Positions 653 through 41,326 of a stretch of DNA of 64,000 bases are shown piece by piece. The notes beneath the pieces were generated by a model. The model was not told the origin of the DNA. It was given only the letters and a program-made list of their open reading frames with translations, and made no database searches. The stretch lies in the NCBI GenBank assembly GCA_040357565.1, contig JBDODJ010000013.1; one strand, given 5' to 3'. Origin of the DNA: Cercozoa sp. M6MM (taxonomy: Eukaryota > Protista > Endomyxa: Ascetosporea). A program made the translations under genes and the position numbers. How positions within the stretch are numbered: the stretch's first letter is position 1; each line of letters starts with the position of its first letter.

Positions 653-3986
<3,334 letters not shown>

Positions 3987-18398: not shown

Positions 18399-20073
18399 CT
18401 ACATGAAATCGTCGTCATCATCGGGAATGATGATGATCTCCCTGAGCGAGTTGAACACGTGCGCAATGTTCGACGTGTCCGTAGCGCACGTCACGTGCGG
18501 GTACAGTCGCCGGTTCGACCGGTTGCGCGCCGCGAACTGATCGCGAATGTAGCGCACACACGCTTCCTATCGGGTAAAAGGCAAGGGGTAGAGGCAAGGG
18601 CCAGGGGGGTAGGGGTTAAGCGTGGGGCAAGGGATAGAGGTAGCGAGGGTACGAAGGACTGCGGCCCCGTGTAGTTCGGGAAGCACGTAGTGAGCGGCTT
18701 CTTCTTGATCTTCTCCTCGAAAAGATCGCGCTTGTTGAGGAACAGAATCACCGGCGTCTTGAGGAACCAGCGCGAGTTCACCACCTGGGGGGGGGGGGGT
18801 AAAGGTATATATATATATATATATACATAAGCGAGGGTAGGGGTCACCTCGTCGAACAGCGCGAGCGACTCGTTGAGCCGGTTGGTGTTGGCGTCCTCAA
18901 ACATGACCTGGTCGTACTCGGAGATAGCGACGACGTAGATGATGCCCGTGACCTTTTCGTCAGGCTTCTGGCCCGTAGCCAGTTCCTCGAACACTCGTAG
19001 CCACTTCTTGCGCTCCGAGCGTTGGCCGCCCACGTCGCGCATCGAGAACTTCACGCCGTCAATGTCGAACTGCGTGCTCACGATACCCGTGGTACGCACA
19101 CGCGTGCGCAGCACGTCCTGCTCCGACGGCACGTAGCCGCCTTGCACCACCTCGCGCACCTGTCCATACCATAAGCATACATATATATATATATATATAT
19201 AATTTATACATATATATATATACGACTCCCCGTACCTTGTCCAGAAAGTAGGCCGCTGAGTCCGGCAACTGGAACTCTGCGCGTCGCTCGTACGCCTCGC
19301 GCACACCCTGAGATTCCCAGGGGGTATGAGGTACAGGGTAGGGTATGGGGGGGGGGGGGGGGAGGGGTACCTCATCGCGCCAGATGAGCTCGATGGCCGA
19401 CGCGAGTTCCTCGGAAAGTTCGCTGTCCTCGGCGTGCTGCTCGATGAGATCGGCGGCCTGTCGGAACTCGGCCGTCGTCGGTGTCACGATACCGAGTTTC
19501 TGGCAGCCACGCAGCAGGCCCACGGCCGCCTGGATCGTGTTCTCGCACACCGTGTCGAGGAACTCCTTGCGCGTCTCCAGCGGGAAACCCGTGCCGAACA
19601 GAGCCTTCATCTGCTTCAGCAACGTCGACTTGCCGGACTCACCAGCGCCCAGCACCTGCAAGAAAGTCACATACCACCCCCCCCCCCCCCCCCACTGTGC
19701 CAATAGTGTACCAATAGTGTGTGCACGTCCGCCTCCACCGACGGTCCGCGCGTCGTTGCGACTGGCGTGTCATCTTGGAGAGCGGCAGCCTTGGTGCCGG
19801 CTCGATCTGCAGCGCATACACCGGAAGTCACATCAGCATTTAAAAAAAAACCAACACCAATCCAGACAAAACAACAGAAATCTCTGGGTCGACCACGTGC
19901 GTCGCCCGCCACGTGGGCGCACACGCCCAGTGGCAGGCATGTACGTGATTGCACACAGATTTAAGACCCACTCACTCACACGGCACGCCACAACACTTAG
20001 ACCGCGAGAAAACAAAAAAGAAAAGACAACCGGGCGGTGACTTACCCTGGTTTGACGACATGCATGCGCCCAT
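18399..20073 (-). CDS. Heterotrimeric G-protein alpha subunit
   Basis: MGACMS acylation motif; G1 [10 protein letters not shown]2 RVRTTG, G3 DVGGQR, G4 NKRD, G5 TCAT. Seven exons with canonical junctions. Confidence 0.97.
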
Positions 20074-33498: not shown

Positions 33499-35458
33499 CT
33501 AGGCAGACAAATCGGCACGCTTCTGCAGCAGCTTGATCTCCGTTTCGGCCCTTGCGCGGTACTCACGACGCCAAGTCGCGAACTCTACAGAAGACATAGA
33601 ATATACTGGAGGCGGGAGGGGGAGGGGGGAGGGGTAGTGAAGACAAGGGTACCCGATGACTCCAGGAAGGTCTGCAGGAGGTTGGTGGTGACAAGTTTAC
33701 TAACTTCGGCGTGCACCTTGGCCAACTCGCGGAGACGCCGAATGCGCACTGAGCCGTCGCTTCTGCTGTTGGGCACAGGCGCGCCAGCTTCACCAAGCTC
33801 GGTGCTACACTCGGCGGCACTGGTGTCGCCACGCGTGGCACCGACGCCTTTGAAGAGTTTCACTACGGTGGAGCGCAAGTGGTCGCTCACATTGAGCATC
33901 TCGGAAGAGTTGCTGTGCAGGAAGCGGCGGTACAGCTCCACCAGGTCGGTGTCCTTGAGACCGTTGCGAGCCGCCATGCGATAGGTTACGAGGAACTCAA
34001 TGTTCTCACCACCTGGGTCATAAATTTACAAATAGAAATCACACAGGGTCAGAAGAAAGGCTAAAGTATAGATGCACAAACGTACTGTAGACATCGTGGG
34101 CCTGCTTGTGCAGCATGGCACGCAGGTCGGGGTTGTCAATCACACGCTCGAGCGACCAGGTACGTGCCGTCCACAGCAACTGAAGTACCTCGACACGTTT
34201 GTTCTCGGCAGCGGCAGCGAACACAATCACGAGCAGTCCAATCACCAGGGCACTGATGGCAATCACCAGTGCCGTGTTGATACTGTCCTGCACATCCTGA
34301 GTGACTTGAGCGACGTCGGCCACAATGCCATCGCGCAGAGGCACAACGTGTTCGAGCACCCTGTCGGCGTGCTCCTGCAGCTCGCCAACGAACAACTCGC
34401 GCGCCTCGGCCACGCTGCTGCTGTTGCCGCCGCCAGCCGTCTTATCAGCAATGGTAGCCAGTGTGTCCATGTAGGCATCGGCACTGTCGATCGTGCTCTG
34501 CGGCGGGTCCGACAGCTCGAGGATCTCGAGCCACGCCTCCTCGAATTGACCCAGTGTCACGCGCGACATCTCCGAGTACAGACCCCGGATGCCGTCTTCC
34601 TTGGCCGAGACTGCCCACACCCCGGTTGTAAACACTCAAAAGGACCTTCCTAGCGTATACAGTCAAGGTGCCACCTGTGAGCATAACGGCCGACCATGCC
34701 GACTCAAACACACTGGCCACCTTGTACGATCTCGTGGCAACCTGTACTTGAACATCAGCTGTGTGGATATCGTCCTCGGCACGCTCTGCTTGCACCCAGA
34801 ACAGCACCTACTCGATGTACATGTCAGATAAAAAACACACGCAGTGCATTCCACTCTATACAAAGGGTATGACATACCGTAGACGTCAGAAGCAGGAGCC
34901 AGCACAGCAGGAGCGACACGGAGACGACTCGTTCCTTCTGCTGCAGTGCACGACGCGAGCGACGCCGCCAGTCACCCTGACTCCGGGTGCCCGACTCTGT
35001 GCCGGTGCCAGTCCCTGTTGCTGGAGCACCGTTGCTCTCCAGGTCACTGCCTGTGCCCGTGCTACCGGCGCTGCCAGCGATCTGGAAGGCATCGCTCAGT
35101 CTGGAGCCTGCCATGTCGCTGCTACAGACATGGGGAGTAAGTTATCAGCATATAGTTGAATGGGAGGGGGGACCTCTCCATGCTGCTGGAGTCACTCAGG
35201 TGCGAGTCGGTCTCGTCGTCAGAATCGTCGTCGTCGGTGAAGAGGTCTTTTGGATGCACAGAATTTCGCGGTGACACGATCTTGACGCCGTCCAGCGCGA
35301 CTCGGTGCAGCAGTCGCTTGCGCGTCACTTTAATCGCGCGCTTGAGACGCAATTGTGCCGCGTTGACCATGCGTGTCGTGAGTAACGCCATCAACAGTGC
35401 GATACCGAGCTATAAAATGTATAGACTATTTGTATGTATAGGTATATGTATGCATGTG

Positions 35459-35500
<42 letters not shown>

Positions 35501-36567
35501 TGTGTGTGTGTGTGTCCACGGAAGTGCAAACTTACAACAACAACACCAGCAACACCCCATTTGACAGCGCGTTTGCGAACGTCGACACTCTCTTGTCGCA
35601 GTCGCGCGAGATCGTTTTTGTTGGCATCCTCGACCGCCACGAGCGATCCGGTCAGCACCGTGGTGTTGAAGTAGATGTCGTTGTCCTTCAAGCTGTTGTT
35701 GACCGACATGTACTTCTGCGCCTCGATCAGCAGTGTCTCGTTACCGCCGGCTTCGAACGCCATTTGCATTCCCTCCTACACACACACGCACTTTCAATCA
35801 GAGGGTTTTACAATTAAGAGGCCGGAGCACACAAGGCGAGTACCGCTTCCCACGGGATCTGTCGTCCCAAGAAGGGCACGTAGGTCGTCACGAATGCGTC
35901 GCGAGTCTCGGGTGCCAAGTCTTCCTGCGAGATGCGCTCCGAGTAGCCTTCGACGGCACGTAGAATATCGTCCCAAAAGCGCTGTCCCTGTACGCCAAGT
36001 CAAGGATCAGTTTTATAGAATAACGGGGAAGGAGTAAAAGGGAATGAAAGGAGGTAAACGTCGACACTACAGTACCTCGGAGACAGTGCCAGCATCGTCG
36101 TACTGCGTGAAGTCGTAGCGCATGCCGAGATCGCCCAATAAGGACGGGTCGAAGATCGTCGTGAAGGCCACCGAGATCTGCCACACGCGAGCCAGGCCAA
36201 GTTCCACAAAGTCAAAGGAAGAGTCCATCACTGCAGGCATGTTCTTGTGCACGAGGTCGCGCACGTCGATGCCGACGACGAGACTGCCGATCACGGTGAC
36301 GATGGAGGCCACCCACATGGCTCCCACCACGAGCTGTGCAACAACAACAATAGCAACAAATGCAAGAAAACAGCAAGAAAAACAACAAAGGTCGCAACTC
36401 ACGCGTTGCGTGCGCTGCGCGCGTTCGAAGCGAAGGTCGGCCTTGTCGAGCTGCAGGTCCTGCTCATCGTCACGAACCGTGGTCACGCCGGCCGTGTCGT
36501 TCCTGGTCAGTGCCGGCGGAGCAGCCGGATTCACCGAGAGTTCGATGGATTCCACTGGTTCTGCCAT
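33499..36567 (-). CDS. Membrane-anchored RGS protein with four predicted TM segments and two helical ectodomains
   Basis: RGS box SLERVIDNPDLRAML..ENIEFL..ELYRRFL..SEMLNVS..TFLESSEF. TMs: LVVGAMWVASIVTVIGSLVVGI, WGVAGVVV|LGIALLMALL, VVSVSLLLCWLLLLTST|VLFWV, ALVIAISALVIGLLVIVFAAA. Confidence 0.85.
35455..35514. repeat. (TG)n microsatellite in an RGS intron
   Basis: Directly visible. Confidence 0.95.
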
Positions 36568-37563: not shown

Positions 37564-40500
37564 ATGTTGTGCGTAGTCTTAGCTCTGTTGAGCTTCGTTC
37601 TGCCCAGCGTCTTGGCAGAAAAGAATTCGAGCTACATCCCTGACCAAGGGACAGTGAGCATCGCGCTCAACCAGCCTAGTTGTCTGCTGCAGTTCTTCTC
37701 GACAGGTCTCACGGCGAAGGTGCGTGTTTTGAGTGCAATGATCGTGGCCACACGGTTCCGGTCACGGTTGGTGGTCGCTTGGGATGTTGTTGTTGTGCGT
37801 TCTTAGGACCCAGACGCCGTCAATCATGCACCGTGTTCACCATGGGATGCGTATCCTACGATCCTGGGAGTCAGTACGATGGCTTTGATGGACATTAACG
37901 ACGAGACCCTGAATCCTAACTTCTTGCCGAATCACAATCTCACACTGCCGCGCTTCGACCCGAAAGGCATCGCGCTGGTTGCGGCCAAGGTATGTCTGGT
38001 CTCGACTGTTGCTTGTCAACAAGGTCTGCAGTTCAATCAATTTGCACAGGAGGCACTCCAGGTCGTCAACTACGTGAACCAGGCAGAGACTCTGGCTGCA
38101 GCCGGCCTGCGCAACGAGAGCGACCCGACGCAACCGCGTCCGATGGTCGGCGTTATTGGTACTTTGCCCTTCCTCCACCCTATCGTTTTACCCCCCCCCC
38201 AGGTCCCTCGTACGCCGACTCGACGTCGGCCTCGTCGCTGATCTACTCGGCGGCCGACCTGATGCAGGTGGCCCCGCTGGTACCGGCGGCCGACCTCAGT
38301 GACGCGAGCAAGTACCCGTACCTGCTGCGCATGCGGGGCTCGGAGCAGACCGGCGTCGTGGCTATTCTGGACCTGTGCCTGTCGGTCGGTTTCAAGCGCG
38401 TCGCCATCTTGCACTCGAACGATCTCTATGGTGACACTCTGACATATTTTTCCTGTCATCTGTATGCTGGTGTCTGATTGATGGTGCGCGAGCGCAGGCA
38501 ACTCGTTCCACTCGAGTCTGGACGATGCGATCAGTCAGCGCGGCGCCGTGGCGGAGGACTTTGAGGTGGGCTACAAGGCTGCTGTTCCTCTTTCGCGCTC
38601 CCTGTCCAAGAATAGCACCGAGTACGCTGACGCCGAGGAGCGCATGCGCGAACACATGCGGCAGATCGAAAAGGAACAGCTGCGCATCATCCTGCTGTAC
38701 ACGACGACGGGTGATGGTTCGTTCCTCTACGAAACTACCTTGTTGAGTGCCTGCTCGAGTACCCTTCCTCCGTGCAGACGACCTTTTGTACGATATTGTG
38801 GCCAAGGACGAGGCCAGTAGCGGCGAGTTCCAGGACTACTTCCGGTCCCACCAGCACCTAGTGGTGGCACCGCCCGAGTGGCCTGCCTTTGTGGTACGCC
38901 ATGACCTCCGCGCGGATGGGACAGAGGTGTCACGTTGCGGTTTGTGTGATTAGGGCATTGTGGGCAAGAAGCGACCGGCCACGCTGGCACTGACTCCGCC
39001 GTCGTACATGTACCTCAAGGACGACCCCTCGTTGCTGGAGGTTGAGCTGTGGTCGCGCCCGGGCCACCCGAAGCGCACAGCCTACCTGCGCTCGAAGACG
39101 GCGCTGCACGCGGCGCTGTCAGCGCCCGACGTGCCCTTTAGCATCCTGTCCACAGGCATTCACTTTGTCGCCGAGACGGCCTACGACTCGGTGGTCCTGT
39201 ACCCCTGCTCTTACCCTCTGCCTCCATCCTACCTTACTAACACTACTTCTTGGGACTGAGCAGGCTGGCGCTCACGTTTGACGAGCTGCTGGAGCGCAAC
39301 CGCACGGCCACGCCGGGCAGTGACGAGGCCATCAAGCTGGCCGCACTACTCAGCGATCGCGAACTGTTTGGACGCGCCATGCAAAAACACATCGGGCACC
39401 AGAAGTTCTCTGGACACTCGGGTACCTAATCTATATATGTATATGCATCTATATGTCTAGTTTATTTCCCCTGGACACAGGACCTGTGGAGTTTGACGCA
39501 CTGCTGGACCGGAAGCCAGCGTACGGAGTGGCGCGGTGGCAGGCCAACGCTTTTCTGACGGGCGATTTCCAGGTGATTGGCAGCTGGGACACTGACACGC
39601 ATACGATCGCCTTCAACACCAACGACGGTGGCGTGCTCGCGAGCGACGGCACCAACCAGGAAGACGTGGCACGCGCGCGCTCCTTTGTGCAAGTGGACTA
39701 CTCGGCCAATGCCGTGGCCGGACAGCCCGGCGACAACGGCTTTCTGCCGCAAGACGGTCCCGGCAAGGTCGAAACGCTCAATCAGGTCAAGATTCAGGCA
39801 CTCGGCATTGTGCTCGGGGTCATTGGCATTGTGTGCGCCGTCGGCGTGCTGGGTACGTTCTCTGGTCTTCTTAATATTATATATATACAATGATTGGTGT
39901 GCTGGTGGGAGCAGTGCATATCAACATGAAGCGCGAGCTGCGCTACGTCAAGATGGGCGCTCCGAACATTCAGTCGATCCAACTGCTGGGTCTGGTGTTT
40001 GCGTTCACGTCGTTGCTGTACGCGCATATGGACACGGAGCGTTTCAACGGCGATTCGGACAAGGCGGAGGGAATCTGTCGTGCCGTGTTCTGGACGGAGC
40101 AGCTCAGCTTTGCCATCGTGTTCGGCGCTCTGCTGGCCAAGGTGGCTTTGTTAAAAAAATATATATATAGATATATATATATCAAGCATATTGTTTGATT
40201 TAAGTTTTTATGTTTGTATGCTAGGCCCTGCGCATCTACGTGATTTTCACACGTAACGATTGGACAGTAGTGCGCTTGTCGGATAAGCACCTTGCCGCTG
40301 TGGTGGTTGCGATCACGTCGCTGGCTGGCATCATCATGCTCGTGTTTGACGCCGGCTACGACGCCATCTATCTGGAGCGCAAGCAGCTTTCGGTTGAGTA
40401 CAGTGACACGCTGGATGCCAACGTGTTCGAATTCACCGAGCGCTGCAAGATTCGGTATACACCTTGCCTCACATGCGATCTATTGTCTCTCAGCTAAATT

Positions 40501-41326
40501 TAATATCCCTCTCCCTATCCGCCTATCTATCTACCTATTAATTTCTATACAAATCTATAAATCTCTCTCAGTTTATATTCATCTAAGCTGCTTGATGTAG
40601 CGACGACTACGACGGCGTGTTCTACGCAGTGACGCTGGGCTTCCAGGGACTTCTCATGGTGGGCGGTCTGTGGCTCGCCAACGAGCTGCGCGGTGTGAGC
40701 ATCCCGGCGCTCAACGACTCTGCTGAAGTGTACCTCTGAACTTGAGCTTTTGTTGTGTACAAGTAGTATACTCCTAATCGTATGCTTATGTGTGTGTCGG
40801 ACTGTCTAGGCGTCAGACGATGGTGCTGGTGTTTGTTATTGCGCTGCTGACAAAGCCGACGCAGCTGCTGGTCGAGTCGGACGACCCGCGCTCGGTCTAC
40901 GTGCTGACGGTGCTGTCGACGTTTTTGCTGAACTTCTCGGCACTGGTGTACCTGTTCGCCGGACGCGTGGTGGCCGTGCTGCGCGGCGATCACGTCGTGC
41001 AGACGAGTTCGCTCGCGTCGATCGGCACGGGACACACCGGCACGAGCTATCTGAGTGGCCAGCGCGGCGACTCCAAGGGCTCCTCCACCGAGGAGGGCCG
41101 GAGCGGTGTCGTTGCGCACTCCGAGAAGAACGACCGCCATTCCTCCACGACGCGGTCAACTCACTGTGAGTTTTTTGCTTTCCGTTTTTGGCATTTCTCT
41201 GTTGTTTGAACTTATGCACTTTGTTTGCTTGCTGTAGCAACCTCTGCGGCGTCCTCGACGAGCGAGATTGCTGGTGTTGCCATGGCCACTCTGCCAGGAG
41301 AAACGTCTGCAGATTCTCACGTCTAA
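37564..41326 (+). CDS. Class C GPCR, GABA-B-like (Venus-flytrap/ANF-receptor domain plus 7tm_3)
   Basis: Signal peptide; VFT motifs ALMDIN..LPNHNL, VGVIGP, LSDASKYPYLLR, VAILHSNDLYG. 7TM motifs ICRAVFW..FAIVFGALLAK|ALRIYVIF and RGVSIPALNDS. No cysteine-rich domain is seen. Confidence 0.92.

Follow-up and report, generated by a model that had tools for sequence, protein, structure and literature searches.

In plants and many protists, the main input to G-protein signalling has been proposed to come from receptor-type regulator of G-protein signalling (RGS) proteins, and the ligands of their seven-transmembrane (7TM) domain are debated. To our knowledge, this 7TM domain is the only receptor-type RGS scaffold that has been studied. 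The 7TM-RGS proteins, which join a receptor and a GTPase-activating protein (GAP), are established in plants and have been found in Naegleria, Trichomonas, fungi and others (PMC3971589, PMC3386157, PMC9283941), and their hosts have G-alpha subunits that are numerous or self-activating (PMC3386157, PMC9283941, PMC6405168, PMC3971589). RGS boxes fused to transmembrane (TM) segments, in varied numbers and without known ligands, occur in most eukaryotic lineages (PMC3971589). Here we describe a gene of the marine amoeba Cercozoa sp. M6MM, at positions 33499-36567 of the window (the whole stretch of 64,000 nucleotides that was analysed, from contig JBDODJ010000013.1 of assembly GCA_040357565.1). 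Its predicted product carries a divergent RGS domain behind four TM helices and two large helical loops, and may be a receptor-type GAP. Lemnamoeba sinaloensis is the present name of M6MM (PMC13746701), an amoeba from fish gills that has been assigned to Apofilosa, Rhizaria (PMC11069148).

Gene, membrane layout and family

The gene model was built from the three minus-strand frames, the open segments of which were joined at GT-AG boundaries. It consists of a coding sequence (CDS) of 2391 nt in ten exons, with nine GT-AG introns of 52-126 nt, and its 796-residue product is letter-for-letter identical to the deposited NCBI protein MHM6MM_001070 (P0006), which lies on a contig of 168,042 nt and is labelled "hypothetical protein". 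The deposited annotation was made by funannotate with training on transcriptome reads and so supports the model indirectly. Splicing is obligatory at eight of the nine introns, since each of these breaks the frame or carries a stop. The parts of the gene and of its predicted product are the following (pLDDT, the local confidence of a structure model).

33499..36567, minus strand: whole CDS, 10 exons, 796-residue product (P0006 / MHM6MM_001070)
36567-36403, 36333-36076, 35987-35844, 35775-35536, 35409-35174, minus strand: exons 1-5
35121-34878, 34807-34675, 34610-34086, 34012-33653, 33584-33499, minus strand: exons 6-10, stop included
36403..36567, minus strand: N-terminal tail, residues 1-55, hydrophilic, predicted cytosolic, no signal peptide, low pLDDT
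36268..36333, minus strand: TM1, residues 56-77, from hydropathy, begins at the first codon of exon 2
35557..36267, minus strand: loop 1, residues 78-262, interrupted by introns 2 and 3, free of Cys, helical throughout, predicted to be extracytosolic
35368..35556, minus strand: TM2, residues 263-283, from hydropathy, split by intron 4
34929..35367, minus strand: cytosolic linker, residues 284-412, predicted disordered (pLDDT 24-35), the least conserved part
34793..34928, minus strand: TM3, residues 413-434, from hydropathy, split by intron 6
34279..34792, minus strand: loop 2, residues 435-584, interrupted by intron 7, predicted to form an up-down four-helix bundle
34210..34278, minus strand: TM4, residues 585-607, from hydropathy
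34135..34209, minus strand: TM4-RGS junction, residues 608-632 (ENKR...QL.W.ARTWSLERVID), with the highest conservation in the family
33565..34161, minus strand: RGS domain, residues ~624-775, spans introns 8 and 9
33729-33851, minus strand: low-complexity insert of ~40 residues (703-743) inside the RGS domain, before helix 7

Kyte-Doolittle hydropathy with a 19-residue span peaks at 2.3-3.1 over residues 57-75, 263-281, 413-431 and 587-605. These are the only four hydrophobic segments of the protein, helices matching them are present in both structure models, and the seven TM helices of the AtRGS1 type were not found. Basic residues are clustered N-terminal to TM1, after TM2, before TM3 and after TM4, flanks that fit a protein with its N-terminus inside, its loops outside and its RGS box inside; the topology is thus inferred to place both loops at the cell surface or in a lumen and the linker and RGS domain in the cytosol. 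The linker reads, in order, as a basic stretch, an acidic run, a Ser/Gly/Thr-rich stretch and a basic stretch preceding TM3. An original prediction, made from the letters of the window, had proposed the order TM1, loop, TM2, linker, TM3, loop, TM4, RGS box, and this layout is borne out by the hydropathy peaks and by the identity of the spliced product with the NCBI protein. The two large loops stand as well, although their sizes had been set too low (185 residues were found for the ~165 claimed, and 150 for the ~140), and the RGS box begins about 18-20 residues past TM4, in keeping with the ~20 proposed. As had also been claimed, the loops are helical and Cys-free, the whole protein having Cys only at C421 (TM3) and C717 (the RGS insert), and the sequons NET201, NNS215, NTT226 and NSS536 are all present in the spliced product.

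When the 23.6-Mb assembly was searched in six frames with exons 2, 8 and 9, the parts were found in the same order at three further loci (C373, C110 and C611+C284), and the window gene is therefore not a chance open reading frame (ORF); it is a genuine gene for what is predicted to be a four-pass membrane protein. Together with the window gene, these loci make up what, by sequence comparison, is a small gene family of four paralogs known only from Lemnamoeba sinaloensis. The deposited paralog proteins, P0001 (608 residues, partial), P0002 (786 residues, complete) and the fragments P0003 and P0007, align collinearly at 50-62% identity. Intron 1 (69 nt), located just before TM1, could be read through in frame; an intron of unrelated sequence and other length stands at that site in the paralogs, and the C110 copy carries an in-frame stop.

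Several observations on individual loci may be recorded. The fourth paralog is split over C611 (6403-7435) and C284 (473-721), which encode the partial proteins P0003 (305 residues, C-terminal) and P0007 (258 residues, N-terminal). In the C373 paralog (1057-2217, minus strand) the introns matching introns 8 and 9 are open in frame, and a 386-residue ORF reads through them, inserting ~22-25 residues; this read-through product has no RGS match in Pfam or the PDB. Intron 4 of the window gene, which splits TM2, holds a long (GT)n/(CA)n microsatellite (window 35455-35516), which fits the reported unusual abundance of simple-sequence repeats in this genome (PMC13746701).

Exon 8, searched exhaustively by phmmer against 1.84 billion representatives, returned M6MM paralogs only, plus two low-complexity artefacts; in 5.8 billion clusters, a word-seeded search with a single sequence and a profile search likewise gave M6MM proteins only. 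The two artefacts, P0004 (1438 residues, E value 1e-18) and P0005 (1167 residues, E value 9e-4), were rejected as relatives, their matches lying in Ala/Lys-rich or tandem-repeat stretches only. Rhizaria are thinly sampled, so that the restriction to this species holds only as far as present data allow a relative to be detected.

Among the four paralogs the junction (residues 608-632) has 80-88% pairwise identity, the highest of any region, followed by TM3 (68-81%) and the RGS core (55-78%); helices 2-4 of loop 2 have 34-54%, loop 1 52%, and the acidic/Ser-Gly linker 33-49%. Variable outward domains on a near-invariant connector are the pattern that would be expected if paralogous receptors took different inputs and transmitted them by one mechanism, and this is weaker evidence than it sounds because it comes from four sequences.

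The RGS domain and its contacts with G-alpha

Direct evidence for an RGS domain from Pfam and the PDB is weak: against RGS (PF00615; gathering threshold 23.9 bits) the paralogs reach 22.9, 20.6 and 20.1 bits (E values 1.2e-4 to 8.9e-4), all under threshold, Pfam exon by exon gives a faint RGS match only (E value 0.15), and a HMMER profile of exon 9 against the PDB yields chance PDCD5 matches only. For this reason the genome's own canonical RGS exons were used, six of them forming a comparator profile, the best of which matches human RGS1, RGS2, RGS4 and RGS10 at E values of 3.5e-9 to 1.9e-5. With hhalign, the C-terminus of the family matches this comparator at a probability of 97.8% (E value 1.1e-12) over 116 columns (3-125 of 130), and the controls with the two N-terminal modules reach 0.1-0.2%. 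An ESM Atlas model of residues 612-796 has the all-helical RGS fold, and its neighbours are all RGS models, with template-modelling scores (TM-scores) of 0.58-0.63 by query and 0.75 by RGS13; our own AlphaFold2 (AF2) model is poor in this region. Since the hhalign match covers the whole domain and the Atlas neighbours are RGS models only, it can be regarded as settled, at the level of sequence and predicted fold, that the C-terminus is a divergent but true RGS domain.

In the structure of RGS4 with Gi-alpha1, the residues S85, E87, N88, N128, D163, S164 and R167 of RGS4 contact the G-alpha switches, and E87, N88 and N128 are the most critical for GAP action. Their counterparts, mapped by chaining the family-comparator and comparator-human RGS alignments, are listed below.

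RGS4 S85: S649, kept (C in two paralogs)
RGS4 E87: E651, invariant in four paralogs
RGS4 N88: N652, invariant in four paralogs
RGS4 N128: N689 (in EMLNVS), codon 33891..33893, minus strand, invariant in four paralogs
RGS4 D163: N759, replaced
RGS4 S164: L760, replaced
RGS4 R167: T763, replaced
33666..33686, minus strand: TNLLQTF, residues 758-764, in place of RGS4 K162-D163-S164-Y165-R166-R167-F168 and alike diverged in all paralogs

Both statements of the original prediction on this domain thus hold, namely that the equivalent of RGS4 Asn128 is kept, unvarying across the family, and that the DSYxRF motif has diverged (NLLQTF in the window protein), in a like manner in every paralog. RGS2, an active, Gq-selective GAP, has Cys at the S85 position and Asn at that of D163; if this parallel is right, the divergence need not abolish activity.

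G-alpha matches occur at ~20 separate contig loci of the M6MM genome, and at least 15 canonical RGS loci exceed the Pfam threshold, a very large G-protein toolkit for a genome of 23.6 Mb. A G-alpha gene lies in the window itself (18399-20073; P0008, 363 residues); it has canonical switch I (RTRVRTTGI) and switch II, an insertion of ~10 residues just past switch II, and an acidic C-terminus. Complex prediction of the RGS box with P0008 gave 0.41 against 0.00 for the best control, a pass that is weak (as is any up to 0.60), may reflect memory of solved complexes, and is not taken as proof of binding; the mark is reached by 51 of 78 solved complexes and by 2 of 108 mismatched pairs. In these runs the RGS-box partner had a pLDDT of 74-76, and at least 86% of contacts agreed between runs.

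The helical loops and possible functions

The full-length AF2 model was made from a 4-sequence alignment and has a pLDDT of 51.5 and a predicted template-modelling score (pTM) of 0.31. Its best part is loop 2 (pLDDT 62-84), with helices at residues 398-475, 479-506, 511-534 and 537-623, the first of which continues TM3 and the fourth of which runs through TM4 into the junction. Loop 2 is predicted, with moderate confidence, to be a long bundle of four helices, with TM3 and TM4 as unbroken extensions. A layout of TM helix, antiparallel four-helix bundle and TM helix, with helices continuous into the membrane, was found for loop 2 only.

In a Foldseek search of the PDB with loop 2, ligand-binding domains of the chemoreceptor MCP2201 came top (E value 0.077, TMt 0.75, root-mean-square deviation 2.9 over ~140 columns), and further matches included Tsr, Tar, KinB, Adeh_2942 and PcaY, but also cytochrome c' and talin; no match reached an E value of 0.001. 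For loop 1, bacterial four-helix-bundle (4HB) sensor domains were among the best structural matches of the low-confidence model, and Foldseek with the model of module 1 gave nothing usable. Pfam 4HB_MCP_1, TarH and CHASE3 had no match, at E values up to 1-5, in the exons, the whole protein or the paralogs, and Pfam exon by exon had no match for the loops. The chemoreceptor-like arrangement of the original prediction is thus retained for loop 2 as a modelled fold and a TM-4HB-TM topology, without evidence of kinship with bacterial sensors, the Pfam searches being negative and the Foldseek scores at background; for loop 1, helices are modelled at low confidence. Comparison of the two modules with each other does not bear out the proposal that they arose by duplication: although collinear, they align by hhalign at a probability of 3.5% (E value 0.012), and Smith-Waterman scores against 500 shuffles give z of -0.7 to 3.1. 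A collinear GGN-x-[ST]..EA[QR] motif common to both modules is suggestive only.

We put at roughly one in two the probability that the protein is a membrane receptor-type GAP for G-alpha, with the helical ectodomains as sensors and with signalling through TM4 and the junction. In this proposal the RGS box would be a membrane-held GAP for one or more of the ~20 G-alpha subunits, and the ectodomains would be sensor modules, at least one of them, loop 2, being predicted as a long four-helix bundle that passes directly into TM3 and TM4. A conformational change might pass through TM4 and the nearly invariant 25-residue junction and so alter the access or the activity of the RGS box, and the acidic/Ser-rich linker could add control by phosphorylation. 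The logic would be that of the plant and protist 7TM-RGS receptor-GAPs on a different, chemoreceptor-like membrane scaffold. As to the earlier claim of a ligand-regulated GAP receptor, its divergent RGS box, four-pass layout, helical loops and, as a model, loop 2 bundle have held, and its duplicated sensor is not borne out. Less likely, and at most a doubtful extension of the proposal, is a eukaryotic receptor-GAP class built fully on the bacterial chemoreceptor plan, in which two TM-4HB-TM modules would form an intramolecular pseudo-dimer, a ligand would drive a piston or rotation of TM4, and the invariant juxtamembrane helix would carry this movement to the RGS box and thereby gate the deactivation of G-alpha; such a scaffold would be either a product of convergence or the descendant of an ancient sensor domain of bacteria, now beyond recognition by sequence.

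Several findings weigh against the receptor-type GAP. P0006 itself scores 14.1 bits (E value 0.062) against Pfam RGS, under threshold, and HMMER profiles of the whole family found no RGS match among PDB sequences. The full-length AF2 model is poor overall, loop 1 is modelled as 5-6 helices at a pLDDT of 38-66, too low to fix a fold, and the scores of loop 2 for sensor domains are tied with those for unrelated four-helix bundles and do not rise above a generic background. Across the paralogs, the density of NxS/T sequons in the loops does not exceed that in the cytosolic parts, so that these sites carry no weight as evidence of topology. The alpha7-alpha8 contact motif reads N-L-..-T, and GAP activity could accordingly be altered or lost. 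The family comes from one species, and the evidence is all computational. A GABA-B-like G-protein-coupled receptor (GPCR) gene (window 37564-41326) stands head to head with the RGS gene and has at least three paralogs (C94:23843-24247, C26:12185-12580 and C3:302595-303001), none of them on contigs that carry RGS paralogs, a test limited by short contigs; within that limit the adjacency is not a conserved pairing, and the GPCR is unsupported as a functional partner.

Three other explanations were weighed. The four TM helices might only hold a constitutive GAP near lipid-anchored G-alpha, with loops that are structural, oligomerising or exposed at the cell surface. The generic nature of the 4HB matches, the failure of Pfam to relate the loops to any sensor family and the lack of sequon enrichment are all in line with such a tether, as are the TM-RGS fusions of varied TM number and without known ligands in most eukaryotic lineages (PMC3971589). 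It is nevertheless somewhat unlikely, since two large ectodomains (335 residues in total) have stayed helical and Cys-free in four paralogs diverged to ~50% identity, and the near-invariant TM4-RGS junction exceeds the needs of a simple anchor. Loss of action on G-alpha is another possibility, the RGS-like box then serving as a scaffold or interaction module in some other process, such as trafficking or adhesion. Axin, the GRKs and the SNX-RGS proteins have RGS-homology domains that work as scaffold or interaction modules. Many RGS-homology domains are without GAP activity (see also PMC3971589). Pfam scores under threshold, the replaced equivalents of D163, S164 and R167, the 40-residue insert within the domain and the weak complex prediction agree with such a loss, but the equivalents of E87, N88 and N128 are unvarying in four paralogs and the neighbouring G-alpha has canonical switches I and II. 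RGS2, moreover, is an active GAP with Asn at D163 and Cys at S85, and we regard a box without GAP action as quite unlikely. Finally, gene prediction could have fused two neighbouring genes, one for a protein with two or four TM helices and the other for an RGS protein, or a pseudogene might have been annotated, and the poorly conserved, disordered linker (284-412) is in line with this; against it, the same collinear order is found at three other loci, exon 8 holds both TM4 and the start of the RGS domain, all introns are GT-AG with one frame kept, and every exon is stop-free, so that an annotation artefact is very improbable.

If the receptor-type GAP is real, this second and unrelated scaffold would mean that receptor-GAP signalling has had more than one origin. 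Its helical ectodomains are large and look soluble, and their link to the RGS box is short and highly conserved. With isolated 4HB domains for ligand screens and the RGS box for GAP assays, such a system would be more open to dissection. The family also extends the view of Lemnamoeba as an organism with a very large G-alpha and RGS toolkit.

Comparison with known membrane RGS proteins

The original prediction had recognised the architecture in no characterised family. In agreement with this, the database searches gave M6MM proteins only, and we found in the literature no description of a four-TM RGS protein with two helical ectodomains, though an earlier mention is possible, for example in Anantharaman et al. 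2011 (Gene 475:63).

The SNX-RGS proteins (SNX13, SNX14, SNX19 and SNX25) are RGS-homology proteins anchored by two N-terminal TM helices, with PXA, PX and PXC domains and no ectodomain. They resemble the window protein as eukaryotic RGS-homology proteins with a TM anchor N-terminal to the RGS domain; PXA, PX and PXC have no Pfam match in the window protein or its paralogs. Another fusion of a membrane domain with an RGS domain, known from an automatic label only, is an ESM Atlas cluster named DUF4395/RGS (399 residues, commonest in Cercozoa). Residues 618-789 of the window protein can be superposed on the RGS model of this cluster with a TM-score of 0.61, whereas the cluster's N-terminal membrane domain is a different one (PF14340), which Pfam does not detect in the window protein.

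In bacterial chemoreceptors and sensor histidine kinases (Tar/Tsr, MCP2201, PcaY_PP, Vc1313, NarQ, TorS), a TM helix, a long up-down four-helix bundle and a second TM helix follow one another as predicted for loop 2; the first and last helices of the bundle are continuous with the membrane helices, and the output domain comes right after the second TM helix. However, structural alignments with these sensors have ~5-13% identity and no sequence similarity was found, the window protein has no HAMP domain and an RGS domain as its output, and its two modules lie in one chain where the bacterial sensors form a homodimer.

Similarly to the 7TM-RGS proteins (AtRGS1 and those of Naegleria, Trichomonas and fungi, e.g. 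MoRgs7), the window protein has a polytopic membrane domain with a cytosolic C-terminal RGS box directly after it, and the presumed logic, in which a receptor switches off G-alpha, would be common to both. It differs from them in having four TM helices and not seven, and two large extracytosolic helical domains where the 7TM-RGS proteins have short loops; the membrane parts have no sequence relation, and the window family is found in one species only. Taken together, these comparisons suggest that the predicted four-pass RGS protein is a variation on the receptor-type and membrane RGS theme, new in its N-terminal part.

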